DNA of 59,900 bases from Macrostomum lignano (taxonomy: Eukaryota). Made by a program: the position numbers and the translations under genes. The notes beneath the pieces were generated by a model. The model did no database searches and was not told the DNA's origin. It saw only the letters and a list, made by a program, of their open reading frames with translations. This document shows positions 2,627 to 59,255 of the stretch, piece after piece; position 1 is the first letter of the stretch, and each line of letters begins with the position of its first letter. The stretch is taken from assembly GCA_002269645.1 (NCBI GenBank), contig NIVC01004116.1:1-59900 (forward strand), written 5' to 3'.

Positions 2627-2628
<2 letters not shown>

Positions 2629-2677
<49 letters not shown>

Positions 2678-2678
2678 T

Positions 2679-2744
<66 letters not shown>

Positions 2745-2745
2745 T
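2629..2745. repeat. (AAT)n microsatellite; expanded 3' tail of the adjacent CORE-SINE
   Basis: Near-perfect AAT run directly abutting the 3' end of the minus-strand SINE; the copy at 37249 ends in ATTATTATTAT. Confidence 0.9.
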
Positions 2746-3075
2746 GACTACATCTGCCCCAATTGGGCCAGATGTGCAACCGATAGCTCAGCCGCAGCTA
2801 TTGCACGCAAGGACGACTAAAGTAACGTAAGTAGTCTTTGATTGCACGGCGCATCTGAAGGCTGCGTACGGCTGTTCAGTCCATGGACTGGGGGGTCGCC
2901 ACACACCCTCAATTACCCCAGCTAATGCTGGTACCCATTTTACAGCTGGGTGAACTGAAGCAATGCAGAGTTAAGTGTCTTGCTCAAGGATACAAATTGT
3001 TCCAGTGGAATTGGGAATCGAACCCCCGACCTTCAAGTCGTGAGTCCGACGCTCTAATCACTGGGCTCAAACCCC
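2746..3075 (-). mobile_element. tRNA-derived CORE-SINE (MIR-like core)
   Basis: CCATTTTACAGCTGGGTGAACTGAAGCAATGCAGAGTTAAGTGTCTTGCTCAAG resembles the MIR CORE consensus. tRNA head with B box GGTTCGATTCC. Full-length homologue at 37249-37557. Confidence 0.85.
2808..2840. mobile_element. 33-bp palindromic micro-element with 8-bp TSD
   Basis: CAAGGACGACTAAAGTAACGTAAGTAGTCTTTG flanked by ATTGCACG at 2800-2807 and 2841-2848. The sister SINE copy has the empty site (single ATTGCGCG). Confidence 0.75.
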
Positions 3076-3734
3076 CCTTAGGTACGGTGATAACTGTTTT
3101 AGGCATGGTTTAGTTAATCTCATCCCATTCACAGTGAGTGGCTACAGTCAGCCGTTGAAAGCAACTCGAGTCAAGCATTAACCGCATCGAAAACACCGCA
3201 CAGCATTTGTTTCAGTTTTGCTCACCGCTGATCCACTTTGCAGCGCCCGGCTCTGCAGCTCGGCCACTTGGGCCCAGTCGGCCGTCAACTTTTCTGTGTC
3301 GCCTCGGCTCAGGCGGGACAGGGGCACAGGGTCGGCCGGAACTGGACCTTAGATCGAACCGCCTCCTCCCAGGGGTTGCGTTTGCGTTTCTTCACGGCTT
3401 GAAACACGCTCAGCGTGGCGAATTCTGGCGCCTTAGACTGGCGCGCCTCCAGCGGGCGCATGAACCTGCAAAGCAGCGCGAAATTTACAATTCATTTACA
3501 ACATAAAGAGTCTATAAGCTTTCAGAAGTTATGCGGAAACTTTCCCTGAATGCAATCTCCCCGTCTTCTGATTGAATTAACTAATATTATATCATTTTCA
3601 ATACTGGGGTAGGGGATCAAAGGTTTTTGCTCTATTTCGATTTGCCCTATAGCTGATGCTAGTGATGCTTTTCACATTTCGTAGGTCAATTCGAGGTGCT
3701 TCCTTGTGATTTTTGATCGTTAAATTGTACTTGT

Positions 3735-5467: not shown

Positions 5468-6185
5468 GTGGTCCAGAGTGAGGCCCAGGCAGCGGACCTG
5501 CTTCTCCATAGAAATATTCTTCCCATAGAGGGTGAGGGGCTTAATGGTCCAGAGCATGCCTTCGACCGCGAGATGTTCGCAGTTTGTTGGTAAACATGAC
5601 CGCCGTGGTTTTCGACTCTGAGAGTCTAAGGCCACATTGGTTTGCCCAACGCTCCGCTCGTCCCAGAAAGCCCTGCAGAAGGTGCGGCCGTCCCCTGCCC
5701 CTCTCCTCTCCTGCGTAGAGCCCTCCTCAGGCTCAACCGCAGAGTCCTCAGAGCAGTCAGCATGGCCCTCTCCGGGCATGGCTGCTTCTCTCGCCACCGC
5801 TTCCTTCAGGGCCAAGTACCCGAGGAGCGGTGCCCCTTCTGCCGCTCAGGCAGTGAAAACGCCGAGCATTTTATCTGCCACTGCCCGGTTTTCACCAGGG
5901 CCAGGCTTACTCACCTCGGGCCAAACCCGGTTCTCTCCGACGTTTGCAGGCCCGAGAGCATCCCGCTGCTCGCCCGGTACCTCAGGGACACCGGACGAGC
6001 TGAATTCTTCCCCACCGTTGGTGAGGAGGACCGCGCTGCAGGCGAGACCGACGGGTCCCCCTGAGCGACACCACTTCAACGGAAGTCATTGGTCGCCAGG
6101 GGCTAGCGAAATGGGCGGTCTCCTCCGCCTCCTCGCTGCATCCGCCGGACGCCCCCTGCAGCTACTCGTAAGTCAAGTAAGTCAA
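5468..6185 (+). mobile_element. 5'-truncated, 5'-inverted non-LTR retrotransposon (RNase H/CCHC type, I/R1/Tad-like group)
   Basis: 5642-6064 (+) encodes the ORF2 C-terminal zinc knuckle (LSGHGCF...CPFC...ENAEHFICHCP). 5468-5630 (-) encodes the RT end (KTTAVMFT...PLTLYG...VRCLGLTLDHK). Tail (AAGTC/AAGT)n. 13-bp TSD GAAGAGTTCGCTT at 5455-5467 and 6186-6198. Confidence 0.9.
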
Positions 6186-15166: not shown

Positions 15167-18229
<3,063 letters not shown>

Positions 18230-30634: not shown

Positions 30635-33600
30635 ATGATGGCGAACTTGCTGCTGTACACTTTGCTGCATCTGCTGGCGCTGCCGGTGCCTCCAGTTGCA
30701 TCTCGCACTTCTATGCTGACTGGCGCATACCGCATCGGTATTGCTGAGGAGCTGCCAGTTAATTCCATTGTGGCCAGTTTAAAGACTTACTTCGAGTCTC
30801 GCGGCAACTCTACAGCTGGCGGCCGGTTCAGCCTGATTCAACTGGACGGGCAGCAGTCCGCGTTCCGTGTGGACGAGCGCTCCGGCGATATCCGGACTGT
30901 GGAGCGGATCGACCGGGAGAAACTGGCGTGCAATAAGGGGGAGAAAGTGGCTTGCGTGTAAGGCCGCGTGACTGGGCCGTTTGTCTAGCCAATCTGTCTC
31001 TGTGTCTAGCCAATCTGCCTCTGTGTCTAGCCAATCTGCCTCTGTGTCTAGCCAATCTGCCTCTGTGTCTAGCCAATCTGCCTCTGTGTCTAGCCAATCT
31101 GTCTCTGTGTCTAGCCAATCTGCCTCTCTGCCTTGCCAATCTGCCTCTGTGTCTAGCCAATCTGCCTCTGTGTCTAGCCAATCTGCCTCTGTGTCTAGCC
31201 AATCTGTCTCTGTGTCTAGCCAATCTGCCTCTGTGTCTAGCCAATCTGCCTCTGTGTCTAGCCAATCTGCCTCTGTGTCTAGCCAATCTGTCTCTGTGTC
31301 TAGCCAATCTGCCTCTGTGTCTAGCCAATCTGCCTCTGTGTCTAGCCAATCTGCCTCTGTGTCTAGCCAATCTGCCTCTGTGTCTAGCCAATCTGCCTCT
31401 GTGTCTAGCCAATCTGCCTCTGTGTCTAGCCAATCTGCCTCTGTGTCTAGCCAATCTGCCTCTGTGTCTAGCCAATCTGCCTCTGTGTCTAGCCAATCTG
31501 CCTCTGTGTCTAGCCAATCTGCCTCTGTGTCTAGCCAATCTGCCTCTGTGTCTAGCCAAACTGCCCATGTGTCTAGCCAATCTGCCTCTGTGTCTAGCCA
31601 ATCTGTCTCTGTGTCTAGCCAATCTGCCTCTGTGTCTAGCCAATCTGCCTCTGTGTCTAGCCAAACTGCCCATGTGTCTAGCCAAACTGCCTCTGTGTCT
31701 AGCCAATCTGCCTCTGTGTCTAGCCAATCTGCCTCTGTGTCTAGCCAATCTGCCTCTGTGTCTAACCAATCTGCCTCTGTGTCTAGCCAATCTGCCTCTG
31801 TGTCTAGCCAAACTGCCTCTGTGTCTAGCCAAACTGTCTCTGTGTCTAGCCAAACTGCCTCTGTGTCTAGCCAATCTGCCTCTGTGTCTAGCCAATCTGC
31901 CTCTGTGTCTAGCCAATCTGCCTCTCTGCCTTGCCAATCTGCCTCTGTGTCTAGCCAATGTTCTGTGTCTAATCAAGCTGCCTTTCTCTGTCAAGCCAGT
32001 CTGCCGCATGACCCGCTGTCTTGCCAATTTTTCAGACAGTCTACCCAATCTACCAACTCTGACTAGACAGTCTGCAACACAGTCTACCCAACCTGCTATA
32101 TTGTCTCGCCAATATATCACTGTTTGTCCATTAAGTCTGCTAATTTATTTTGCAAATCGTTCTCTTCGATCTGCTTCCGTTCATCTTTTAAGTCAGCCTC
32201 CCCTCTCCAAAATACCCAGCTTCCACTTCCTGGCCTACCAAAACAACCGCATCGGTGTCAATACGTTCATCGAAATCTTCGACATCAACGACTGCGCCCC
32301 AGTCTGGAACGAAAGCGTCGTTCAGCTGCATTTCCGCGACGGCGACCCGGCCGGCGTGGCCGTGAAAGTCGCGGCAGCCTCGGACGACGACTGCGGCCGG
32401 AACGGCAGCCTCATCTACAAGCTGGACAACCGGGGCGCCGCCTTCTCCCTGAGGAATCGAAATGGACAGCTCGAGCTGGAGACCAACAGGCTCATCGACA
32501 GGGAAGAGTGCGAGTCATACAGCATGACCCTGTACGCTACGGACGGCGGCGAGCCGCCCCTCTCCGGCTCCGTGCAGCTGCTTGTCCTGGTCGCCGATAT
32601 CAACGATCACTCGCCGCAGTTCGCTGGCAGCCTGCTCTCGCCGCCGCGCCCGGTGTACGAAGACGAACCGGTCGGGTCGGTTGTCCTGCGGCTGAACGCG
32701 ACGGACCGAGACTCCGGCGCCAACGGCAAGGTGCTGTTCGAGTTCGCCAGCGTGACAGGCGAAGATCAAGAGCTGGCGATGCAGCATTTCAGTGTGGAAC
32801 CGGATGGTGACGTCATCATCAAGGAGAAGCTGGACTACGATACGATGGCGAAGAAGTACTTTATCTTCGAGGTGAGTGCTCTGTGCTCTGAAGGGGATCA
32901 GAGGAAAGGGATGTAGAGGAAGGCGGATGTAGATGAAGGCGGAAGTAGAGGGAAGGCGGAAGTAGAGGAAAGGTGGAAGTAGAGGGAAGGCGGAAGTTGA
33001 GGGAAGGCGGAAGTTGAGGGAAGGCGGAAGTTGAGGGAAGGCGGAAGTTGAGGGAAGGCGGAAGTTGAGGGAAGGCGGAAGTTGAGGGAAGGCGGAAGTT
33101 GAGGGAAGGCGGAAGTTGAGGGAAGGCGGAAGTTGAGGGAAGGCGGAAGTTGAGGGAAGGCGGAAGTTGAGGGAAGGCGGAAGTTGAGGGAAGGCGGAAG
33201 TAGAGGAAAGGCGGAAGTAGAGGAAAGACGGATGTAGAGGAAGGCGGATGTATCAGGCATTTGAGTGCGTAGCAACAGTTGAGCATAGATTAGAATCCCG
33301 TCTTCGCCATCCCACTGCGCAGGTAATCGCCCGAGACGACGCTGAAGGCGCTGAGAATCGCTTGAGTTCCACGGCCACAGTCAGCATTGCGGTGAATGAC
33401 AGACGGGACGAGCCGCCGGTAGTGCAGGTGTGCTTCCTGCCTAACAGTTGCAGTCAGTCGCCTTCGGCCTACCGAGTCAAAGAGGCTCAACCGCCGGGCT
33501 CTGCTGTAGCGCTGGTGCTGGTGAGAGATCCCGATGCCGGGGATCGAGTCAGCTGCTCGGTGGAAGCTGAGCCGAGCTCGATGCCATCCAAGCTGCAGTT

Positions 33601-36600
33601 TCCCTTCGTTCTGCTGAAGACACCTGGGGGCGGCGGGGTTGGAAGAGATGCGGAGGTAAGCTCAGAATGATCAGTGCTCACTGCTCAGAGTGATCAGTGC
33701 TCACTGCTCAGAGTGATCAGTGCTCACTGCTCAGAGTGATCAGTGCTCACTGCTCAGAGTGATCAGTGCTCACTGCTCAGAGTGATCAGTGCTCACTGCT
33801 CAGAGTGATCAGTGCTCACTGCTCAGAGTGATCAGTGCTCACTGCTCAGAGTGATCAGTGCTCACTGCTCAAAGTGATCAGTGCTTACTGCTCAGAGTGA
33901 TCAGTGCTTACTGCTCAAAGTGATCAATGCTCACTGCTCAGAGTGATCAGTGCTCACTGCTCAGAGTGCCTGGAGTACCCTCTTCTAACAGACAAATCTC
34001 ACAAGCCACTATGCCTGCAGTGTGATTTCAATCAAAATTTACGTTACATTTCAAAGAAACACTCTTTCTTACGAGTACGCAATAGACAAAAGGGGATTTT
34101 GATGTTCACTAGACATTAATCCCTTTTGCTTCTCACGCAAAGAGAGTGTTTTTATCGGCTGGATCGGTCTTAAGCCTGTAAGATTGCCATCTTTCTTTCG
34201 TATTTAAATTTCCTCTTTCAATTTCTGCGTGAGTGTCCTTGAGATATTTCCAGGTGTTACGTTCCCATAAATTAAAAATCGCAAAGAGTCGCTTTCAGCC
34301 CTTTGTCTCCCAACTACTTTATATGGGTTAGGCGGATTTATAATGATTCCATTTCAAACGGCCTGTGCGCGAGCACTTTCCCAACGCAGCAGTCATCCCC
34401 CATCTGGATCTTCGACCTCGTCACTAACCGGACCCTGGACCGGGAGAGCGAGTCGGTGCTCTGCTTCCGCATTGCCTGCCGCGACACCAGCGGACGCGTC
34501 GCCCATAAAACTTGCTGCGCCAAGGTCGAGGACGTCAACGACTCGCCGCCGGTGCCCGTTGAATCGCCGATCTCCGTCTGGGCGCCTGAAGGCGACATTG
34601 CGATGCGACCGCTGCTGACTCGCCTTAACAAGTACATCAGGGATGCCGACGAAGGTGAGGCGTTTCGGATTCGCTGTCGGCTTTTTCGTGTGCTCAGAGA
34701 GTCGCCTAAAACTTATTTTTCTGATCTTAAAGATGGCAATAAATGAACTCGGAGTACATCTATATTCCCCAAGCATGTCAAGCATTGAAGGCGGATGTAG
34801 AGGAAGGCGGATGTAGAGGAAGGCGGATGTAAAGGAAGGCGGATGTAGAGGTGTTACGTTTAATTGGTTCCCCGCCAATTCATCACACTTCTAAATTTTG
34901 AGGGGGGATCTTATTCAGACTAAAGGCTTCTCAGTGGCCCTTGTAATTAGTGGATCGTACAAGTATATGGAGCTACCGGACATTTCCCCTCCGGCGATTC
35001 CGGTTTCATCACCACGTCGATCAACGGCCTGCACGACGTGGAAGGCCCGCAACCAGCGGTTCCAGCGGGTGGCAGCTACAACCAGCACGCCTGGCTGGAG
35101 GTGCCCGTGGAGGACGCAGATCACCCACTGCTCACCTACCTGCACGGTTTTACCTATGCCTACCGCGCCCTGAACCAACTGCTGAACCAATTGAACCATC
35201 TTCCGTGCACCGAATCCAAAATTAACCGGAATCAAGCCTGGAGATTAAGGCGACGAGTGTCGGACGCGATACGAGCGATCTTATTGGCATCATGGCTTGA
35301 TGGACTGAGCTGAAATGCGTCCAACGGCAGGAAGTTAGGATACTGAGAATCAGCTGAGGCCTCTGAGGCCTACTGGACGATTCTTAGGGCGGCTTAAACA
35401 GTCCTTACTAAAAATCATTGGGTTAAGAAAGTTCTATGCAGATCCTCTAGAGAACGCATAAAGCTAAATGGGATTTCGCCCCAAGAAGCTTCTCCAGAGC
35501 ATACTAAATGCACTGGCGATGCGACAAACATGCGTTCCTTACCGGCCTCCAGATTATTTCTATGAAAACCGAGCGAAGCATCTCTCTACTTCAGTTGGCC
35601 AAAATGTTAATCTTCATCTCAATTAAAAAACTTCCTAGGCGTTAACGCAAAGCTGGCCTTCCAATTGGATCCCAACGACATAGCAGCAGCTGCCATCGTC
35701 AGCTTAGACATCGACACTGGACGCCTGACTCCGCGGATTGTCTTCGACCGGGAGCGACAGGATGCGTATAACTTCGCCGTGGTGGTCAAAGATCGCGGAC
35801 AGCCGCCGCTCAGCACCAGCATCAGCGTCTGGCTGCGCGTGTCCGACGTCAACGACAACACGCCGGTGTTTCTCAAGCCTGAGTACGTCTTCAACATCAG
35901 CGAGAATTGCCAGCCGCGCAGCTCCGTCGGCAGAGTTGAAGCTCTCGACGCCGACTCGGTCCAGACAGGCAATGGCCGAGTACTGTATCGGCTGGCACCA
36001 GCCGAGAGCTCCGGTCGGGTCGCCGATGTCGACGCTTTCAGCGTGGATAGGGACAGCGGCGAGATTTTGACGGCGTGAGTTTTCGGGACAGAGAATCTCA
36101 TTCTGCCCCCGGCCTGTCGAGTTGAGTGGCTGTGCGAAAAGACATCCATCCGCTCTTTGGATTCTTCTATCCGCTGTCATTCACCCGCTGCTACATTTTG
36201 ACCTTTTATATCCGCCTATTTGTATCCTCCCTCTACCACCTGCCCACCTGACCTCCACTACCCGCATCCATCGCCCCACCCCGCAGAGCCAATCTGGACA
36301 GGGAGACCCAGGCCGAATACTCATTTCACGTATTGGCTATCGACCAGCCAGCAATGGAAAGTGAGGCCAGCCTGACGGCCACCTGCTTAGTCCGAGTCCT
36401 GCTCGCCGACGTCAACGACAACGCGCCCCGGCTGGTGACCTCGCCGCCGCACTACCCGGCGGTGTTCCACCTGCGCCAGCGCGAGCCCGGCGTCCGAGTT
36501 GGCCGCGTCCGCGCCGAGGACGCCGACAACATTCAAGCCGACGCCTCGGCCGGCCTCGAATACGAGCTGGTGAACTCGGTGGAGCTCGGCCATCGGTTCA

Positions 36601-38962
36601 GCGTGGACCGCGCCTCCGGCCTGGTGCTGGTTGGCCAGTCGCTGCGCCGCGACACCGGTCAGGAGTTTCAGTTGCGTGTGCGCGCCTGCGACACCCGGCA
36701 GCTGCCGCGCCGCTGCTCCGCCGCCGGGCTCTACCGCGTTCTCGTGGAGACCGACGACGTTGCTGTCGTCGGAGTCGGAAATTGGAGAAGCATCTCAGAG
36801 AGCGACATCCGAAATCATCCGCAAGCTCAACCGCCGTCGCACGTTGGTGGCGGAGGCTTCGGCAGCGTTGGAGCCAGCGAGACGGTGATCGCCTGCCTGT
36901 CGGCCATGCTGCTGTTACTGGGCGCCGCAGTGGTGATCATCGTCTGCGTGCTGGTCAGGCGCAGGCCCGAGCACAAATGCCGGCGGTCATCAGACGTTGT
37001 TGAAGATGTCTTGGCGCCTGGAGCGGCTTTGGCAGCGGCATCGCTGTGCGATGGGGCTTCCTCACTGGATGCCGGGCAGTTTGGTGAGTGTCCAGGGCCT
37101 GATGGTGAGTGTCCAGGGCGTGATGATGAGTGTCCAGGGCCTGATGGTGAGTGTCCAGGGCATGATGATGAGTGTCCAGGGCCTGATGGTAAGTGTCCAG
37201 GGCGTGATAGTGAGTGTTCATGGCGTGATGGTGAGTGTTCATGTCGACGGATTGTAGCCTAGTGGTTAGATCGTCGGACTCACGACTGAAAGGTCGGGGG
37301 TTCGATTCTCGACCCACTCGGAACAATTGAGCAAGACACTTAACTCTACATTGCTTCAGTTCACCCATCTGTAAAATTGGTGCCAGCATTAGCTGGGGGT
37401 AATTGAGGCTGTGTGTGGCGACCCCCCCCCCGGTCTTTGGACTGAACAGCCGTACGCAGCCTTCAGATGCGCCGCGCAATAGCTGCGGTTGAGCTGTCGG
37501 TTGCACGTCTGCCCATTAGGACAGGTGTAGTTCATTAGTACTATTAATTATTATTATGGCATGATGGTGAGTGTCCAGGGCATGTCAGGCATGTACACTC
37601 TCTGTGCCTTGGAGGCTGGCCCGCATGGGTTTGGATCGCATGAAAATCCCCAATGTGGAATCGAACCAGACGAGTCTACCGCTGAGCTGCTTTGCCCCCC
37701 TCCCTCCAGTTCATGGCACGACGGCGCGTGTCCATGGATGGTAAGAATTCAGAACATGCTTATGGGAGCAGAAAAATGGTGACGAAAACATTGCAGAGAT
37801 GAACTCGATCAGCACCAAGATGATACCTGCGTTTCCTTACGATCGCGCAGTTACGGAAAGCTACCAGGACTACCCGGACTGGGCAGAGGTGATTTTCCTC
37901 CCTGTTGTTTTCATATTATTACAGCACTCAGACAAATAGTTTGCCCATTTCTTATCCCTGCAGGACGATTTCGATGCCTCCAAGTCCAACGGCATGCGCC
38001 TAAAATTACCTGGTACTGCAGTTTATACAGCTCACAGACGAGCCACAACTGACAGAAATGCGGGCAGTAGGTACTACACCACTAGTCCTGCTATTGGTGA
38101 GACTGGAATTTTAATAACACGTTTATATGTGGTGCTTAAATATATTTTCTATCAGACGTCATTCCAACAATAAGTAGTCACAGCTTGAGTCCCCTGTGAG
38201 TGATGTACGAGTACATGATTTATGATTCCTGTCTGACAGCTTGAGTCCCCTTAAGCTACTCAATTTACTTGTAAGGTTGTATTGTCGCAAAACAAACATT
38301 CTGCCTGCCAATAGAGTGCTATTTTTAGAGTAACAGTCTGACATGAGATCATTGCGTGATTCTCCCTGACTCACTTCCTCTTCTCTAATTTGCACGCTCT
38401 ATCATTGACATAGCTTCTTTCGGCTAGCAAGTTTCAAATAATGTTTTTTCGTCAGCCTAAGGAAGCAACTACTAGCGCCACTCGTAGTTTGTTGTTGATA
38501 GGGCAGTGAATATCGACTTTAGCAAGTGTTCAATACGCTGTGTACTTTAATACTGTGAAGCTCTTGTAAGTAAGAGTGAGTGAGAGAATTGACTACTTGC
38601 AAGTAGTTTAATGTAGGAAGAAGGCATAAAAAACTTTCTCTTTCTCAAAACTTTAACCGCGACGCTCTGCCTGCCCAGCAGGCTCGAATTCCGAGTACCA
38701 GTCGCTGGACGCGCCCAGGCTCCGTTTCCCCTGGCAACCAGTGGGCAGTGCCGAGGCCCCGGCCCGGCTGCTGCACCTCGGCGGACTTCGCGCCAATCCC
38801 GAACTAGCCGACTCTGGCGCCGCTGCAGGCTCCGCAACGCTACCAAGGAATTTCCGTCGCCGAGCTGACCACAACGACCAGGTGGACAAAACTGCCTCTG
38901 TGTACTTCCGGCTGGCCCGCCGAGGGCCGCTCTGTCCCTTCAATGAGGCCAGCTTTGTATGA
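30635..38962 (+). CDS. Non-clustered protocadherin (signal peptide, 7 EC repeats, TM, cytoplasmic tail), 9 coding exons, about 1085 aa
   Basis: Exons 30635-30957, 32220-32871, 33323-33655, 34390-34654, 35639-36074, 36287-37083, 37851-37888, 37964-38096, 38682-38962 (3258 nt, in phase). DRE, DxNDxxP and DxD Ca-binding motifs; Cys pair after the EC1 DRE; TM VIACLSAMLLLLGAAVVIIVCVLV; C-terminus ASFV. The three tail exons are less certain. Confidence 0.9.
30980..31960. repeat. 21-bp minisatellite (TCTAGCCAATCTGCCTCTGTG), about 46 copies, protocadherin intron 1
   Basis: Direct inspection; explains the LARHRGR, CLANLPL and SSQSASV ORFs. Confidence 0.93.
32908..33252. repeat. 16-17-bp purine-rich minisatellite (GGGAAGGCGGAAGTTGA), intron 2; related short array at 34787-34850
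   Basis: Direct inspection. Confidence 0.88.
33660..33966. repeat. 23-bp minisatellite (GCTCAGAGTGATCAGTGCTCACT), intron 3
   Basis: Begins about 5 nt after the donor at 33656; the unit contains an AGTGA...TCACT inverted pair. Confidence 0.9.
37082..37244 (+). repeat. 21-bp repeat containing copies of the exon 6 donor (GATG|GTGAGTGTCCAGGGCCT)
   Basis: GT donors at 37084, 37105, 37147, 37189 (GTAAGT), 37210, 37231; one more unit at 37558-37583 beyond the SINE. Confidence 0.9.
37249..37557 (+). mobile_element. Full-length tRNA-derived CORE-SINE
   Basis: Head GGATTGTAGCCTAGTGG (A box)...GGTTCGATTC (B box); core TTGAGCAAGACACTTAACTCT...GCTTCAGTTCACCCATCTGTAAAATTGG; (ATT)n tail; homologous to 2746-3075. 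Confidence 0.9.
37584..37710 (-). mobile_element. SINE family B 5' fragment
   Basis: Reverse complement AGCTCAGCGGTAGA (A box)...GGTTCGATTCC (B box)...GGCCAGCCTCCAAGGCACAGAGAGTGTACATGCCTGAC. Confidence 0.75.
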
Positions 38963-41772: not shown

Positions 41773-44700
41773 ATGGAAACGTTACGTAGAATTTTTGGGC
41801 TTCGAAACGAAACCAGTCCTTCAGATCTCAAAAAGAGTGGCATTGAATGTATTGTTCAATGTCTAGACGAAGGAAAAGCAACTATTAATTTACCTGTAAG
41901 TCCTTTTCTTTGATACATGGCCCTATTAAAGTTATCTTGAATTCCATATGTGGTTCTTAGCTTTTTTGAGTCAGTAGCCTAGCTGTTTTTCTACATTAGA
42001 TATTTTAGACATTTAAATGATCATGTCCTAGAAATATAATAAATTATTTATTATATTTAATTTCCAACATTAGAATTAAAATTATAATTTGATAAAAAAT
42101 CAAGGCTAGTTAATATAGTTTTCCTGTGATATAAGTTAAATATAGGTAAATTAAGCACACTAGCCTAAATTTTAAAATGAAGAGATATATTTTAATAAAG
42201 TAGTAGGAAAAACTATTTTTAGATAATTTATACTTCATTCAAAAATAATTATAAAATAAAATGCTTCAAATATACAAGGTATACTTCCATGTGTTCTATA
42301 GAAACTAACAATTTTTAAGTATTATATAAAAATGAATCATTTTATTATTTTTATATTTTAGAATATTTATTAGAGTATCTATTATACTTTTCATCTTTTT
42401 GACAGAAAACATGCCTTGCCAGTGAGCTCTATGATAGAGTCTACAAAGAGCTAGACTTCCAATGTGAACATGACTATTTTGCTTTGCAATTCACGGACTT
42501 TCATGGCATCAGGCATTGGCTAGATCCAACTAAAGAGTTACGGCGCCAGATTACTAAGCGAATGCGTGAGTTTTGCTTCTTGACTTACTGTATCTATTGC
42601 TAATAATATAGCAAATTGTAATTTAAACATTTTATTACCTAAACCAGAATATATACTAGCTATATGAATGTGAAAAAAGCAAAATAATTCAAAGCTAAAT
42701 AGTTTTGACCTAGTTTTTGATTGCCTATGACCGAAGCTATCCTTGACCCAAATTGTCCATGACCCAAACTTTCCATGACCCAAACTATCCATGACCAAAA
42801 ATATCCATGACCCAAACTATCCATGACTAAAACTATCCATGACCAAAGCTATCCATGATCAATTGTCCATGACCCAAACTATCCATGACCCAAACAGTCC
42901 ATGACCCAAACTGTCCATGACCCAAAATATCCATGATCAAAATTGTCCATGACCCAAACTATCCATGACCCAAACAGTCCATGACCCAAACTGTCCATGA
43001 CCCAAACCAGTCCTATCAAAATGGGGCATCAAAGGGCAATTAAAGTAATATTTGCATAAATTACCACACTGTTTTAGCTGGTCCTCCGTTCACATTCCGC
43101 TTTCTGGTAAAGTTCTATTCTAGCGAGCCGGACAACTATTTGAAAGAAGAGCTGACTCGGTGAGATAATGTGTATAAATTGTATAAATAAATATCTAGTT
43201 ACATTTTGTCACCCATGGACATGTTATATTAAAAACCTGCCGACTTTTCCCCAGCTACTTGTTTGTCCTGCAACTGCGTTCGGATATTCGAGATGGCCGG
43301 CTTGTTTGCCGAGACGAGGCCAAGGCGGCCGAACTAGCGGCTCTGGTTATACAAGGTGAGGCCCTGCTGCCAGGGTATAGTAGCTGGGAGTGCTTGAGTG
43401 GAGGACTGAAGTGTTTTTGGGTTGGTAAAAGTACTCTTTAAGGATTATTATTAGCAAAAGTACACTGATATTTTGTTTTAGCAAGAGTTTATTTAAGTGC
43501 TGCACGTCAGTAAAATTATACCGAAAGCCTAGATAATTAAATAAAGTACACTGAAAGTCTGAAGGATTAGAAAAAGTATACACTGAAAGTGGAGGCATTA
43601 GAAAAAGTATACTGAAAGTCTGGGGGCTTAGCAAACGTACACTAAAAGTCTGGAGGCTTAGCAAAAGTACACTGAAAGTCTGGAGGATTAGAAAAAGTAC
43701 ACTGAAAGTCTGGAGGCTTAAGCAAAAGTACACTAAAAGTCTGGAGGATTAGAAAAAGTACACTGAAAGTCTGGAGGCTTATTTAAAGTACATTGAAAGT
43801 CTGATGGATTAGAAAAGAACACTGAAAGTCTGAAGGCTTATTTAAAGTACACTGAAAGTCTGGAGGCTTATTTAAAGTACATTGAAATTCTGATGGATTA
43901 GAAAAGTACACTGAAAGTCTGGAGGCTTATTTAAAGTACATTGAAAGTCTGATGGATTAGAAAAGTACACTGAAAGTCTGAAGGCTTTTTTAAAGTACAC
44001 TGAAAGTCTGAAGGTTTATTTAAAGTACATTGAAAGTCTGATGGATTAGAAAAGTACACTGGAAGTCTGGAGGCTTAGCAAAAGTACACTGAAAGTCTGG
44101 AGGCTTATTTAAAGTACATTGAAATTCTGATGGATTAGAAAAGTACACTGGAAGTCTGGAGGCTTAGCAAAAGTACACTGAAAGTCTGGAGGCTTATTTA
44201 AAGTACATTGAAATTCTGATGGATTAGAAAAGTACACTGGAAGTCTAGAGGCTTAGCAAAAGTACACTGAAAGTCTGGAGGCTTATTTAAAGTACATTGA
44301 AATTCTGATGGATTAGAAAAGTACACTGGAAGTCTAGAGGCTTAGCAAAAGTACACTGAAAGTCTGGAGGTTTATTTAAAGTATATTGAAAGTCTGATGG
44401 ATTAGAAAAGTACACTGAAAGTCTGGAGGCTTATTTAAAGTACATTAAAAGTCTGATGGATTAGAAAAGTACACTGAGAGTCTGGAGGCTTAGCTACGAG
44501 TAAAATACAATAAGAGACGCCGGCTACCAAAAGTACTCTAAAGATCTGGGGGGTAGCATATAAGTAACACTAAAGTGTACGGGAGCTAGCAAAAGTACGA
44601 GTACACCAGAGAATCAGGGGTACATCAGTAACCAAATGTAATCCAATCTAAGTCTAATGTAACCAAATGTAACCAAACGCTGCTTAACCAATCCCAAATG

Positions 44701-47700
44701 TAAGGAATAACCTTTCCGCTCCCATTCGCAGCGGAGGAGGACGACTACGACCCCCTGAGACACACGCCCGGCTTCGTGTCGCAGTTCAAATTCCTGCCAG
44801 ACCGACAACAGACAGAAGCGTTCGAGCTGCGAGTGCTGGACGAGTACAGGAAGCTGGCGTGAGTGGCTCTTTGCCTTATCAGCTGTTTGTGCAAATTTGA
44901 AATTGGTTATGTTTATTTACTGTCTTCAAATCTGTTTTTAGTAACAGAAACCTATCGCCGGCCCTGTGCGAGCGGATGTACCTGAGTAAAGTGAAGAACT
45001 GGGAGAACTATGGAGTCGATATGCACACTGTTTCGGTTAGTAACTCATTGTTCACTACATTGTTTATTTCGTTTTAATTCGTTTGTTTTATAGTTACATT
45101 TTTATCAGTGAGTTATGGGCATCCCACAATTTAGTCATGAACTGTTCCATAATTGAGTCATGAACTGTTCCATAATTGAGTCATGGACTGTTCCATAATT
45201 GAGTCATGAACTGTTCCATAATTGAGTCATGAACTGTTCCATAATTGAGTCATAAACTGTTCCATAATTGAGTCATGAACTGTTCCATAATTGAGTCATG
45301 AACTGTTCCATAATTGAGTCATGAACTGTTCCATAATTGAGTCATAAACTGTTCCATAATTGAGTCATAAACTGTTCCATAATTGAGTCATAAACTGTTC
45401 CATAATTGAGTCCTGGGGTGTTCCATAATTGAGTCATAAACTGTTCCATAATTGAGTCATGAACTGTTCCATAATTGAGTCATAAACTATTCCATAATTG
45501 AGTCATGAACTGTTCCATAATTGAGTCATGAACTGTTCCATAATTGAGTCATGAACTGTTCCATAATTGAGTCCTGGGGTGTTCCATAATTGAGTCATAA
45601 ACTGTTCCATAATTGAGTCATAAACTATTCCATAATTGAGTCATGAACTTTTCCATAATTGAGTCCTGGGGTGTTCCATAATTGAGTCCTGGGGTGTTCC
45701 ATAATTGAGTCATAAACTGTTCCATAATTGAGTCATAAACTGTTCCATAATTGAGTCATAAACTATTCCATAATTGAGTCCTGGGGTTTTCCATAATTGA
45801 GTCATAAACTGTTCCATAATTGAGTCATAAACTATTCCATAATTGAGTCATGAACTGTTCCATAATTGAGTCCTGGGGTGTTCCATAATTGAGTCCTGGG
45901 GTGTTCCATAATTGAGTCATAAACTGTTCCATAATTGAGTCATAAACTGTTCCATAATTGAGTCATAAACTATTCCATAATTGAGTCATGAACTGTTCCA
46001 TAATTGAGTCATGAACTATTCCATAATTGAGTCCTGGGGTGTTCCATAATTGAGTCATAAACTGTTCCATAATTGAGTCATGAACTATTCCATAATTGAG
46101 TCCTGGGGTGTTCCATAATTGAGTCATAAACTGTTCCATAATTGAGTCATTGACTGTTCCATAATTGAGTCATGAACTGTTCCATAATTGAGTCATGAAC
46201 TGTTCCATGATTGAGTCATGAACTATTCCATAATTGAGTCCTGGGGTGTTCCATAATTTAGTCATAAACTGTTCCATAATTGAGTCCTGGGGTGTTCTAT
46301 GATTGAGTCATGAACTGTTCCATAGTTGAGTCATTGATTGTTTTATTAACCAACCTGTGTGTTTTATGAGCGAATTTCCAGTGAGCCGACACTTTCCTGG
46401 AAAATGCCGGTCTAAAGTGTAACCCTAACCCAACTTTATAGCACCTAAAGCGCAATTGCTGCAAAAATTCAGTAACGAGTTAAAAAAACCCAGGCCTTTC
46501 TCAGAACTGTCTAACTGTCTTATATTTTGCGTACATCTGTCTGTCTGCCAGCTGCTAATCTCTTATCTCTGTTGGCAAAAGGTGTCTTTTTTGTAGAATA
46601 AAAAAACTAACACTGATACGTTTGCACACGCGCTCTCCTTGGACGAAAGCAGTGCAGTCAGTTTTATTTCGGTCGCTTTGTCCCCTCACGAATTCTGTTC
46701 TTGTTTGTGTCGTAATTTTTCGGCAGTTGTGTAAAAGCAGTTTCAACGGGCTTCTTCTGGCCTCTTCTGAATCTGTTAATACTGTAAAAGGCATGAAATA
46801 AACTCGTAATTCTACGAAGTCTTACTTCGTAAAGGATTGTAGCTTAGTGAGGGGGTTGTAGCCTAGTGAGGGGATTGTAGCCTAGTGAGGGGTTGTAGCC
46901 TAGTGAGGGGTTGTAGCCTAGTGAGGGGTTGTAGCCTAGTGAGGGGGTTGTAGCCTAGTGAGGGGATTGTAGCCTAGTGAGGGGGTTGTAGCCTAGTGAG
47001 GGGATTGTAGCCTAGTGAGGGGTTGTAGCCTAGTGAGGGGTTGTAGCCTAGTGAGGGGTTGTAGCCTAGTGAGGGGGTTGTAGCCTAGTGAGAGGGTTGT
47101 AGCCTAGTGAGGGGGTTGTAGCCTAGTGAGAGGGTTGTAGCCTAGTGAGGGGGTTGTAGCCTAGTGAGGGGTTGTAGCCTAGTGAGGGGTTGTAGCCTAG
47201 TGAGGGGTTGTAGCCTAGTGAGAGGGTTGTAGCCTAGTGAGGGGGTTGTAGCCTAGTGAGAGGGTTGTAGCCTAGTGAGGGGTTGTAGCCTAGTGAGGGG
47301 TTGTAGCCTAGTGAGAGGGTTGTAGCCTAGTGAGGGGGTTGTAGCCTAGTGAGAGGGTTGTAGCCTAGTGAGGGGGTTGTAGCCTAGTGAGGGGTTGTAG
47401 CCTAGTGAGGGGGTTGTAGCCTAGTGAGGGGTTGTAGCCTAGTGAGGGGTTGTAGCCTAGTGAGGGGTTGTAGCCTAGTGAGGGGGTTGTAGCCTAGTGA
47501 GGGAGTTGTAGCCTAGTGAGAGGGTTGTAGCCTAGTGAGGGGGTTGTAGCCTAGTGAGAGGGTTGTAGCCTAGTGAGGGGGTTGTAGCCTAGTGAGGGGG
47601 TTGTAGCCTAGTGAGAGGGTTGTAGCCTAGTGAGGGGGTTGTAGCCTAGTGAGAGGGTTGTAGCCTAGTGAGGGGTTGTAGCCTAGTGAGAGGGTTGTAG

Positions 47701-50700
47701 CCTAGTGAGAGGGTTGTAGCCTAGTGAGGGGGTTGTAGCCTAGTGAGGGGATTGTAGCCTAGTGAGGGGTTGTAGCCTAGTGAGGGGTTGTAGCCTAGTG
47801 AGTGGGTTGTAGCCTAGTGAGGGGGTTGTAGCCTAGTGAGAGGGTTGTAGCCTAGTGAGGGGGTTGTAGCCTAGTGAGAGGGTTGTAGCCTAGTGAGGGG
47901 GTTGTAGCCTAGTGAGGGGTTGTAGCCTAGTGAGAGGGTTGTAGCCTAGTGAGAGGGTTGTAGCCTAGTGAGGGGGTTGTAGCCTAGTGAGGGGGTTGTA
48001 GCCTAGTGAGGGGGTTGTAGCCTAGTGAGAGGGTTGTAGCCTAGTGAGGGGGTTGTAGCCTAGTGAGGGGGTTGTAGCCTAGTGAGGGGGTTGTAGCCTA
48101 GTGAGGGGGTTGTAGCCTAGTGAGGGGGTTTTAGCCTAGTGAGGGGGTTGTAGCCTAGTGAGAGGGTTGTAGCCTAGTGAGGGAGTTGTAGCCTAGTGAG
48201 AGGTTGTAGCCTAGTGAGGGGTTGTAGCCTAGTGAGGGGGTTGTAGCCTAGTGAGGGGTTGTAGCCTAGTGAGGGGGTTGTAGCCTAGTGAGAGGGTTGT
48301 AGCCTAGTGAGGGGTTGTAGCCTAGTGAGGGGGTTGTAGCCTAGTGAGGGGTTGTAGCCTAGTGAGGGGTTGTAGCCTAGTGAGGGGTTGTAGCCTAGTG
48401 AGGGGTTGTAGCCTAGTGAGAGGGTTGTAGCTTAGTGAGGGGTTGTAGCCTAGTGAGGGGGTTGTAGCCTAGTGAGGGGTTGTAGCCTAGTGAGGGGTTG
48501 TAGCCTAGTGAGAGGGTTGTAGCCTAGTGAGGGGGTTGTAGCCTAGTGAGGGGGTTGTAGCCTAGTGAGAGGTTGTCGGGGGGGGTTGTCGTGCGATTCA
48601 CAGGCATGAGGGCCAACCCCAAAGGCACAGAGATGTACATGCCTTACGATTAGAAAGTCAGGGCTGCTATACACACTGTGTAAGCATGTGTATCAGTGCG
48701 TGCTTGTGTACAGTATTGGCGCGCTTGTACGTTCTCAGGAGTCAGCGGAACGGGCAGAATTGCTGTCCCAGAATTGGGCCTCCTGAGATTACTGTTCCGG
48801 GTATATTATTCCTTATCTGATCCCATATCGATCCTCATTATCTGATCCCCTATCGATCCCCATTATTTGATCCCATATCGATCCTCATTATCTGATCCCT
48901 ATCGATCCCCATTATTTGATCCCATATCGATCCACATTATCTGATCCCATATCGATTTCTATTTTATTAATTTGTGATCCTTAAATCTAAGTTATATGAA
49001 TTATGGTATCTGTGTATTGAGGCAGCTCTATCATTCAGCCACAAAATGTCCGAATCAACAGGGCAAGGACGGTCGCACTTATCACCTGGGCCTCACACCT
49101 GCCGGCATTTTGGTTTACGATAGGCAAGAAAAAATTGGACTATTCTTCTGGTGAGCAGACAATTTGCAATGCTTTTTAATGCACTTTTACGCCAAATTAA
49201 TTAATTTTTAGTCCTTCTTGTTAAACCTTTATTCAATATTTTTATTTGCTCCGCTTCTAGGCCGCGGATTATCAAGATCGATTTCAATCGGAGTAAACTG
49301 AAAATTGTGGTCACCGAGGACGACAATCAGGTTGGATTTCGCTTTCAGTTTGACATTCCTCAGGATTATGGCTTACTGTTCGAAGAATCTTCTTTGAAGC
49401 ATTTATTATTTGCTCTAATCCTCATTTGAGGTATTTAATCCCCTCAAATCCTCATTTGAGGCATTTAATTCATTGTAATCCTCATTTGAAGCATTTAATC
49501 ATCTCTCTAATCCTCATTTTTAGGCATTTAATCCCCTCTAATCCTCATTTGAGGCATTAAATCCCCCCTAATCCTCATTTGAGGCATTTAATTCATTGTA
49601 ATCCTCATTTGAAGCATTTAATCATCTCTCTAATCCTCATTTTTAGGCATTTAATCTCCTCTAATCCTCGATCTAAGCATTTAATTCCTGCCATTCCTCA
49701 GTTAAAGCATTTAATCCCCCCTATCCCACTAATATCAGTAAGCGTCTCCCACCCGCAGGGAGCCCAGCAAGATCACGTGTTTGTATTCAACCTGGCCGAC
49801 ACGCAGTCCTGCAAGCACCTGTGGCGCTGCGCTGTTGAGCACCATTCGTTCTTTCGCCTAGTTGAGACCCGGGCGCCGCCAACCAAAGCCAAGCAGCTGC
49901 TGCGAATGCGGTCCAGGTTCTACCACAGCTTCCGCACCGAGTCCGGCCTGGTCAGGGAGCGCCAGTTCGGCACCAGCCAGCGCCGGTCGGCCAGATTCGA
50001 ACGGCGACCGTCGACGCGGCACAGCACCAGGCCCAGCTTTGCCAGGGCCGACGCTGAGAGGCGATTCGCCAGGGCGCAGGAGCGGCAGGAGGCCAAGTTG
50101 GCCACGCTGGAGCGGGTCAAGGCCGAGGAGGACGGGTGAGCGGCGGCGGGGAGAGGGTGAAGCTGACGGGGTGACTGGATGACAGGGTGAAGCTGACAGG
50201 ATGACAGGGTGAAGCTGACAGGATGACAGGGTGAAGCTGACGGGGTGACTGGATGACAGGGTGAAGCTGACAGGATGACAGGGTGAAGCTGTCAGGATGA
50301 CAGGGTGAAGCTGACAGGATGACAGGGTGAAGCTGACAGGATGACAGGGTGAAGCTGACAGGATGACAGGGTGAAGCTGGCGGGGTGACTGGATGACAGG
50401 GTGAAGCTGACAGGATGACAGGGTGAAGCTGGCGGGGTGACTGGATGACAGGGTGAAGCTGACAGGATGACAGGGTGAAGCTGACAGGATGACAGGGTGA
50501 AGCTGACAGGATGACAGGGTGAAGCTGACGGGGTGACAGAGTGAAGCTGGCGGGGTGACTGGATGACAGGGTGAAGCTGACAGGATGACAGGGTGAAGCT
50601 GACAGGATGACAGGGTGAAGCTGACAGGATGACAGGGTGAAGCTGACAGGATGACAGGGTGAAGCTGACAGGATGACAGGGTGGAGCTGACAGGATGACA

Positions 50701-58164: not shown

Positions 58165-59255
58165 GATAATTCACTTAGTTTTGGGGTTATTCACTTAGGT
58201 TTGAGATCGTTCACTTAGGCTTGGGATCATTCACTTAGGCTTGGGTTATTCACTTAGGTTTGGGATCGTTCACTTAGGCTTGGGATCATTCACTTAGGCT
58301 TGGGTTATTCACTTAGGTTTAGGATCGTTCACTTAGGCTTGGGATCATTCACTTAGGCTTGGGTTATTCACTTAGGTTTGGGATCATTCATTTAGGCTTG
58401 GGTTATTCACTTAGGTTTGGGATCGTTCACTTGAGCTTGAGATCATTCACTTAGGTTTGTGATCATTCACTTAGGCTTGAGATCATTCACTTAGGCTTGG
58501 GTTATTCACTTAGGTTTGGGATCGTTCACTTAGGCTTGGGATCATTCACTTAGGCTTGGGTTATTCACTTAGGTTTGGGATCGTTCATTTAGGCTTGGGA
58601 TCGTTCACTTAGGCTTGAGATCATTCACTTAGGCTTGGGTTATTCACTTAGGTTTGGGATCATTCATTTAGGCTTGAGATCATTCACTTAGGCTTGGGTT
58701 ATTCACTTAGGTTTGGGATCATTCATTTAGGCTTGGGTTATTCACTTAGGTTTGGGATCGTTCACTTAGGCTTGGGATCATTCACTTAGGCTTGGGTTAT
58801 TCACTTAGGTTTGGGATCGTTCACTTAGGCTTGGGATCATTCACTTAGGCTTGGGTTATTCACTTAGGTTTGGGATCGTTCACTTAGGCTTGGGATCGTT
58901 CACTTAGGCTTGAGATCATTCACTTAGGCTTGGGTTATTCACTTAGGTTTGGGATCATTCACTTAGGCTTGGGTTATTCACTTAGGTTTGGGATCATTCA
59001 CTTGAGCTTGAGATCATTCACTTAGGTTTGTGATCATTCACTTAGGCTTGAGATCATTCACTTAGGTTTGGGATCATTCACTTAGGTTTGGGATCATTCA
59101 CTTGAGCTTGAGATCATTCACTTAGGTTTGTGATCATTCACTTAGGCTTGAGATCATTCACTTAGGTTTGGGATCATTCACTTAGGCTTGAGATCATTCA
59201 CTTAGGCTTGGGATCATTCACTTAGTATTTTGTGATGCTTGAATAACTTTACAGA
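58165..59255. repeat. 20-bp minisatellite (CATTCACTTAGGCTTGGGAT), about 54 copies
   Basis: Direct inspection. Confidence 0.92.

Follow-up and report, generated by a model that had tools for sequence, protein, structure and literature searches.

Short palindromic inserts between 8-bp duplicates as candidate excision scars of a P-like transposon

The most probable identity of a 33-bp palindromic insert found in a SINE sequence is that of an ordinary but seldom noticed object, namely a P-type excision scar fixed in an animal genome. More precisely, the insert would be the immobile remnant left by the excision of a longer, P-element-like transposon, a related 46-bp insert would probably have arisen in the same manner, and the two would represent independent events. 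To this explanation as a whole we assign a probability of about 0.5. In the following, the window refers to the whole 59.9-kb stretch of DNA that was analyzed; the coordinates of all features are collected in Table 1.

Important insight was gained from the insertion site itself. Positions 2800-2848 read ATTGCACG, then CAAGGACGACTAAAGTAACGTAAGTAGTCTTTG (33 bp, 2808-2840), then ATTGCACG again, and the two 8-bp duplicates are identical at 8/8 positions. Compared ungapped with its own reverse complement, the 33-mer is a palindrome around position 2824 with an arm complementarity of 12/16. Between the duplicates lie 16 nt of one end and 17 nt of the other and nothing else; alternatively, base 2824 (A) may form a centre of 1 nt, with an arm of 16 nt on either side (16+1+16). 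The hairpin energy of the 33-mer is not unusual (z = -1.7), and a comparison of its parts with the surrounding SINE and the rest of the window gave no match besides the known related palindromes.

The interrupted SINE, referred to here as copy A, has 41 bases that are missing from its sister, copy B, and these consist of the 33-bp insert plus one 8-bp duplicate. Both duplicates in copy A carry the same A where copy B has a G; therefore this A/G difference either predates the insertion or arose in copy B. The preliminary description had claimed that a 33-bp insert is bounded by perfect 8-bp duplicates and that the site is empty in a sister SINE, and exactly this was seen at 2800-2848 and 37473-37480, respectively. 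The 8-bp target-site duplication around the 33-mer, with its empty site in a paralogous SINE, is confirmed by direct observation. Copy B is the sole other copy of the host SINE within the window, and the direction of the change rests on parsimony.

As to the SINE family, the two copies (2628-3085 and 37245-37560) have in common a conserved block in the centre, ...GAGCAAGACACTTAAC...CACCCAGCTGTAAAATGGGTACC..., and both carry a tail of the (TAA)n type. Apart from the insert, 9 bp of copy A (AAGGATACA, at about 2987-2995) are absent from copy B.

Table 1. Positions of the 33-bp insert, its host and sister SINE copies and the 46-bp relatives in the window
Feature	Position	Strand	Basis or remark
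Target-site duplication, left copy, 8 bp, ATTGCACG	2800..2807		Single ATTGCGCG at the same spot in the sister SINE
Left arm, 16 nt, CAAGGACGACTAAAGT, read as outer end of one terminal inverted repeat	2808..2823	+	13/16 match with left arm of the 46-mer
Right arm, 17 nt, minus-strand reading CAAAGACTACTTACGTT, read as outer end of the other inverted repeat	2824..2840	-	Ungapped palindrome
Target-site duplication, right copy, 8 bp, ATTGCACG	2841..2848		Read from sequence
Host tRNA-derived SINE, copy A	about 2745..3085	-	(TAA)n tail at 2628-2744; insert ~60 bp from tail end
Sister SINE, copy B, ~85% identical to copy A, without the 41 extra bases	about 37245..37531	+	Comparison with copy A
Empty site, one ATTGCGCG read on the minus strand, same SINE sequence around	37473..37480	-	CAGCT-ATTGCGCG-GCGCAT uninterrupted
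46-bp relative: arm CAAGGACAATTGAAGT (16 nt), centre ATATATATAACGTA (14 nt), arm ACTTCAGTTGTCCTTG (16 nt)	17346..17391	+	Within (GTCT)n
Identical second copy of the 46-mer	17656..17701	+	From 310-bp tandem duplication; offset-310 identity 400/410 across 17150-17559
310-bp unit of the (GTCT)n array, ~2.4 tandem copies, ~98% identity, carrying the 46-mer	about 17113..17867		Offset-310 comparison

Two further palindromes of the same kind are located in the (GTCT)n array. The arms of the 46-mer are complementary at 15/16 of the first 16 nt; the pairing stops there and is followed by the 14-nt AT-rich centre, and the hairpin energy is low (z = -7.2). The flanking 8-mers, CTGTCTGT and CTGCCTGT, are identical at 7/8 positions, yet nothing can be concluded from them, since a period-4 repeat shows an apparent duplication after every in-phase insertion. 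The second 46-mer is a by-product of the 310-bp tandem duplication, so that the window holds two independent events, not three. Thus, the three copies listed in the preliminary description exist as described, but the two 46-mers among them count as one event.

To relate the two loci to each other, the arms were aligned. As had been proposed, the 46-bp inserts at 17346 and 17656 do align with the 33-mer: in terminal register the arms match at 13/16 and 12/16 positions, with a joint chance of ~1.4e-10. Judged by these arms, the relationship between 33-mer and 46-mer is not in doubt. Additionally, the 7-mer AACGTAA, located in the right half of the 33-mer, recurs in the 46-mer centre (p ~0.009 for a 7-nt match with a shuffled 46-mer centre). 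A gapped alignment with an 8-nt (AT)4 insertion and a 5-nt deletion gives 28/33 matches and a common form of ~38 bp; the ungapped alignment, with 25-26 matches, scores about equally, and the support of the gapped version for a common fused ancestor is suggestive rather than decisive. The two inserts are separated by a 13-bp length change and several substitutions, and in the ungapped reading their centres measure 1 nt and 14 nt. The 38-bp perfect palindrome with a TACGTA centre that had been put forward as consensus is absent, as AACGTA is read in both copies. A templated origin of the 46-mer filler was considered by eye and rejected, the adjacent arms offering just the weak resemblances AAGTA/ACGTA and AACGT/AACTT.

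The sequence supports the view that the 33-mer is transposon-derived and represents two terminal inverted-repeat ends fused head to head. In our proposed explanation, a longer cut-and-paste transposon with CAAGGAC... ends of at least ~16 nt would have inserted into the SINE and generated the 8-bp duplication ATTGCACG. A P-element-type transposase would then have excised the element, with one cut at the boundary (3' strand) and another ~17 nt within the inverted repeat (5' strand). Each flank would thereby retain its duplicate and, attached to it, a 3' tail of ~17 nt derived from the transposon end. Finally, host end joining would have ligated the two non-complementary tails, with the loss of one nucleotide in the 33-mer (16+17). 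As to the 46-mer, an AT-rich filler of ~12-14 nt would have been added or, alternatively, extra end sequence would have been copied in an aborted gap repair before joining. The 16+17 and 16+14+16 anatomies and the kinship of the two loci can be read directly from the DNA; from these we infer a former long element, P-type cleavage and an immobile remnant.

The chemistry on which this explanation is modeled has been described in detail for Drosophila. Staggered cleavage by 17 nt and an 8-bp duplication are defining features of P transposition: the P-element transposase cleaves the 3' strand right at the edge of the element, and the 5' strand is cut 17 nt further in, within the inverted repeat (PMC7776569). 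After excision the flanks keep 17-nt 3' tails, which are non-complementary and are joined by end joining (PMC2895639). With the uncut P{wa} reference reading acccagac-CATGATGAAATAACATA / TATGTTATTTCATCATG-acccagac, the recovered junctions start and finish with acccagac, and in between lie up to 17 nt from either side, linked by microhomology or filler (PMC2895639, Tables 1-3). The commonest products keep 14+2+14 or 15+2+15 nt; joins of 30 and 32 bp recur, and in one case a blunt join left 16+17 = 33 nt (PMC2895639). An insertion class shows 16+12+16 and 13+14+17 = 44 nt with AT-rich fillers of 12-14 nt, e.g. TAATAATAATATAA (PMC2895639). By this comparison, the 33-mer (16+17) and the 46-mer (16+14+16, AT-rich centre) lie well within the published P{wa} junction spectrum.

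The likeness to the donor-site scars of Drosophila melanogaster P is thus one of architecture: both 8-bp duplicates are kept, no more than 17 nt of each end stand head to head, and an AT-rich filler is optional (PMC2895639). The 16+17 join of 33 bp resembles our 33-mer, and the 44-bp joins with 12-14-nt filler resemble our 46-mer (PMC2895639). Several differences must be set against this. The fly ends read CATGATG... and those found here CAAGGAC...; the fly scars were recovered in an assay, whereas the present inserts are old and fixed in the genome of another animal; and here no parent or transposase is seen in the window, and in one copy an end may be retained beyond 17 nt.

Zebrafish Pdre (P-like, THAP9) is comparable as a non-insect P-type family with short 13-bp inverted repeats, 8-bp duplications and internally deleted copies (PMC10983969, PMC7776569). 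However, its ends read CATACCTGTCAAC, its deleted copies measure hundreds of bp and keep subterminal repeats, and forms of 30-50 bp are not described in the parts of these sources consulted.

A number of observations speak against the excision scar. The shared AACGTAA suggests either a common fused ancestor or that the 46-mer kept one end to a length of at least 22 nt, beyond what a 17-nt tail would provide. It can be explained if the parent end continues ...GAAGTTACGTT and the 46-mer retained at least 22 nt through partial repair synthesis, and such synthesis before joining is a common outcome in flies (PMC2895639). Furthermore, the argument draws on only two events and on a 17-nt stagger demonstrated for Drosophila P only. 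The 16+17 composition of the 33-mer and the 16-nt pairing of the 46-mer match the prediction of a 17-nt cut, but a 16-nt terminal inverted repeat would look identical. In rice, fixed insertions exceed fixed excisions by 2.6-8.7 to 1, and because of this ratio, two scars and no element in 60 kb are mildly unexpected. A point in favour of the scar is that a comparison of rice species revealed fixed excision scars with filler of a mean of 13 bp (PMC4423477).

We also considered which superfamily the parent could have belonged to. An 8-bp duplication fits P, hAT and a few rarer superfamilies. CANRG termini are quoted as a rule for P-superfamily transposons; hAT elements have an 8-bp duplication with the preferred form nTnnnnAn and ends of the form YARNG. 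The duplication known from the P superfamily (8 bp, or 7-8 bp) is present, with ATTGCACG occurring twice in copy A and as a single-copy site in the sister SINE, and the CAAGG end of the 33- and 46-mer fits both CANRG and YARNG. Two published P-type ends start with CATGA (Drosophila P, PMC2895639) and with CATAC (zebrafish Pdre2, PMC10983969), which counts against the P-type scar, as does the fit of CAAGG and of an 8-bp duplication to hAT. The expected hAT target preference was seen in part, as T is at position 2 in both duplications and A is at position 7 in neither (ATTGCACG, CTGTCTGT). As had been proposed earlier, a P-type or hAT-type parent appears reasonable as a candidate.

During hAT excision, hairpins form on the flanking DNA, and the duplicates are left with few altered bases and no transposon ends. 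A related point is made in the abstract of PMC5499845. At the present site, instead of such a clean excision, 16-17 nt of each end remain between the duplicates. Although hAT elements resemble the insert in their 8-bp duplications and in the fit of CAAGG to YARNG, they differ in that their excision leaves no 16-17 nt ends and in the preferred A at position 7, which neither duplication has here. A hAT parent would consequently need another route, such as aborted gap repair or mobility of the mini-unit itself, and it is above all the 16-17 nt left in place that argue for P-type chemistry.

Other families were rejected on general knowledge of their properties. Helitrons make no duplication and insert at A/T; Tc1/mariner, piggyBac, Harbinger and CACTA elements have the wrong duplication length; Foldback elements make a 9-bp duplication and are much longer.

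Next to these structural considerations stand the searches for further copies and for a parent element. The paired-arm pattern CAAGGAC-N10-40-GTCYTTG was found at 3 sites of the window (5 strand-wise matches) against 0.08 expected from shuffles. The single 7-mer CAAGGAC occurs 10 times against 9.1 expected, and five of its sites lie outside the palindromes and show no extended similarity. Scanning the whole window with the 16-mer arm at up to 3 mismatches returned the known arms and one chance-level match at 43031, and no solo arm. By script, the 59.9 kb were also searched for CANRG...CYNTG pairs separated by no more than 8 kb, with similar ends and with 8-mers that match; only the known units emerged. 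The search for longer elements with the same inverted repeats, which had been suggested as a check of the preliminary description, accordingly yielded none within the 59.9-kb window: over spans of up to 8 kb, these ends and an 8-bp duplication did not frame any longer element. A general window scan for any short palindrome between 7-9-bp duplicates gave minisatellite artefacts only. Autonomous members of the P superfamily encode a THAP-domain, GTP-dependent transposase with an RNase-H fold (THAP9-like); an ORF of this type, or any other transposase, was not found in the window. Pfam searches of the ORFs near the site were empty, and so were the Rfam and tRNA scans.

Regarding its overall composition, the window is animal nuclear DNA in which mini- and microsatellite arrays number in the dozens. 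The density of tandem repeats is unusually high: Tandem Repeats Finder gave 59 rows with a score of at least 100, and many arrays are 0.3-1.7 kb long with units of 12-60 bp, e.g. 46837-48569, 45124-46334 and 58165-59225. The long ORFs of the window are mostly artefacts produced by these repeats. Protocadherin-like exons were detected at 32230-32916 and 36333-37000 (Pfam Cadherin, 3.7e-22 and 1.7e-9), the second including a transmembrane stretch, with closest proteins in the searched collection that are only 32-39% identical (bird, snake), so that either this gene or its source species is missing from that collection. These exons are separated and then followed by minisatellites, among them a 21-bp repeat (37082-37238) in frame with the second ORF.

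Larger collections were also scanned for the paired-arm pattern, with the limitation that metagenome, viral and prokaryote collections have almost no power for finding copies from an animal genome. The viral contigs, for which the same near absence of power applies, gave 0 matches. The metagenomes gave one match, on L001, a Prevotella-type contig encoding MutL, IMP dehydrogenase and peptidyl-prolyl isomerases, and 596 Gb of prokaryotic genomes likewise gave one, in a Prevotella MAG (L004) that proved to be the same contig. The matching element (L001 12535-12571, equal to L004 4535-4571) is an intergenic 37-bp hairpin, CAAGGACGACTGAAGTCTTAACTTTCAGTCGTCCTTG, which matches the left arm of the 33-mer at 15/16 positions. 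As it is bacterial and intergenic and has no flanking duplication, it was rejected as a relative of the 33-mer; it is probably a terminator-like structure of chance resemblance.

A different repeat of the window did have relatives in metagenomes. The 5'-truncated tail of a non-LTR retrotransposon (LINE) at 5520-6064 (+), with a C-terminal Cys/His motif (...CPFCRSGSENAEHFICHCPVF...), shows 85% DNA identity to a 1.4-kb contig of JGI metagenome 3300038379 (L002) and 62-78% protein identity to products on short metagenome contigs (six ENA/JGI matches, including ERZ28573545); its relatives were all on metagenome contigs of about 1 kb. These LINE-tail relatives indicate that DNA of the source animal or a relative is present in those metagenomes.

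The main competing explanation is the one given in the preliminary description, i.e. that the 33-46-bp unit is a truly mobile, ultra-short mini-MITE, whose ends were fused once and which is moved in trans by a P- or hAT-type transposase with a new 8-bp duplication at every move. MITEs are usually about 50-800 bp long and occur in many near-identical copies. The present units share with them terminal inverted repeats, a target-site duplication, the lack of coding capacity and derivation from a larger element by internal loss, but they measure 33-46 bp, represent two events in 59.9 kb and have dissimilar centres. We know of no eukaryotic cut-and-paste element as small as 33-46 bp, and a literature search on short MITEs yielded nothing relevant, only papers on arachnids. 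Mobility would account well for the fused-ends structure at two independent loci with no parent copy in the window, for the asymmetric centre AACGTAA common to both copies (with the gapped 28/33 alignment to a ~38-bp form), and for a perfect duplication with a clean empty site, as insertion predicts. MITEs can moreover arise through microhomology-mediated miniaturisation of a parent, according to the part of PMC3814204 consulted. On the other hand, there are two events only, their lengths and ungapped centres differ (1 nt and 14 nt), the 13-bp length change and several substitutions between them stand against 33-mer duplicates that have stayed 8/8 identical, and the 33-mer lies exactly at the 16+17 limit predicted for a scar. 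A 17-nt stagger applied to a 33-bp element was computed to produce two non-overlapping 16-nt single strands with 0 bp of duplex, so that under P-type chemistry the excised 33-mer would have neither a duplex core nor internal transposase-binding sites; applied to the 46-mer, 12 bp of duplex would be left. For Drosophila P, the transposase-binding sites are inside the 31-bp repeat, and natural non-autonomous elements measure 0.5-2.8 kb (PMC7776569). Given the stiffness of DNA in general, ends 0-14 bp apart would also have to bend extremely to enter one complex, and no further copies turned up in the viral, metagenome and prokaryotic-genome collections, though these have near-zero power for an animal genome. 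Two copies of unequal length and centre, the 16+17 anatomy and the missing duplex core together speak against mobilisation in trans as had been claimed. We regard the mini-MITE as a doubtful reading, and an active ultra-short element appears mechanistically unlikely.

Two further explanations dispense with mobility altogether. An extreme internal-deletion derivative could have formed in place through aborted gap repair or replication slippage, the parent being a hAT, a P or another element with an 8-bp duplication; after its excision or breakage, copying from the sister chromatid would cease a few tens of nt into each end, and the nascent ends would be joined. Most recovered products in Drosophila in fact reflect incomplete synthesis from one or both ends followed by end joining (PMC2895639). 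Such a deletion would account for the 46-mer if one end keeps 22-30 nt (CAAGGACAACTGAAGTTACGTTATATATAT) with the joint in the (AT)n tract, and it works for hAT parents, to which CAAGG and the 8-bp duplication fit equally. The exact 16 and 17 nt of the 33-mer, however, would be a rare result of random breakpoints, and parent copies are equally missing from the window, so that we judge this origin distinctly unlikely. Concerning the 46-mer, these data leave deletion in place and excision scar inseparable; the remnant would be immobile in both, and in the former the kept length would not be set by the 17-nt stagger. Very unlikely, in our estimate, is an insert of no transposon origin, i.e. palindromic filler or a template switch at a staggered break, or a reversed polarity in which the 41 bp are ancestral and were lost from the sister between 8-bp repeats. 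What lends this some substance is that the direction was deduced by parsimony from two SINE copies only, and that unrelated palindromes matching the pattern exist, such as the Prevotella intergenic hairpin without duplication. Opposed to it are the same arms at an unrelated microsatellite locus (chance 1.4e-10), the failure of the 33-mer parts to match the surrounding SINE or the rest of the window, and the exact 8-bp duplication around a terminal-inverted-repeat unit, which is the signature of transposase integration.

If the units were mobile, they would constitute a family, still active today, of eukaryotic cut-and-paste elements smaller than any known, consisting of just two 16-nt ends. 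The lower size limit of eukaryotic DNA transposons would have to be revised, and ideas on end pairing would be challenged, since the transposase would act on ends separated by just 0-14 bp; it might bring together ends of two separate DNA molecules or use a hairpin form as its substrate. There is also a lesson for annotation, in that a short palindrome between 8-bp duplicates is not automatically a MITE.

If, instead, the excision-scar reading is true, these fixed inserts would be a natural record of P-type excision in a non-Drosophila animal, and a P-like family would once have been active in the source genome. Its transposase would have cut within the ends, at a depth of ~16-17 nt; this peculiarity, the oddest of P chemistry, has so far been shown for the fly enzyme only. 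Scars collected genome-wide would then yield arm-length distributions, and with them cleavage positions without biochemistry, and their count would give the number of past excisions, which are normally invisible.
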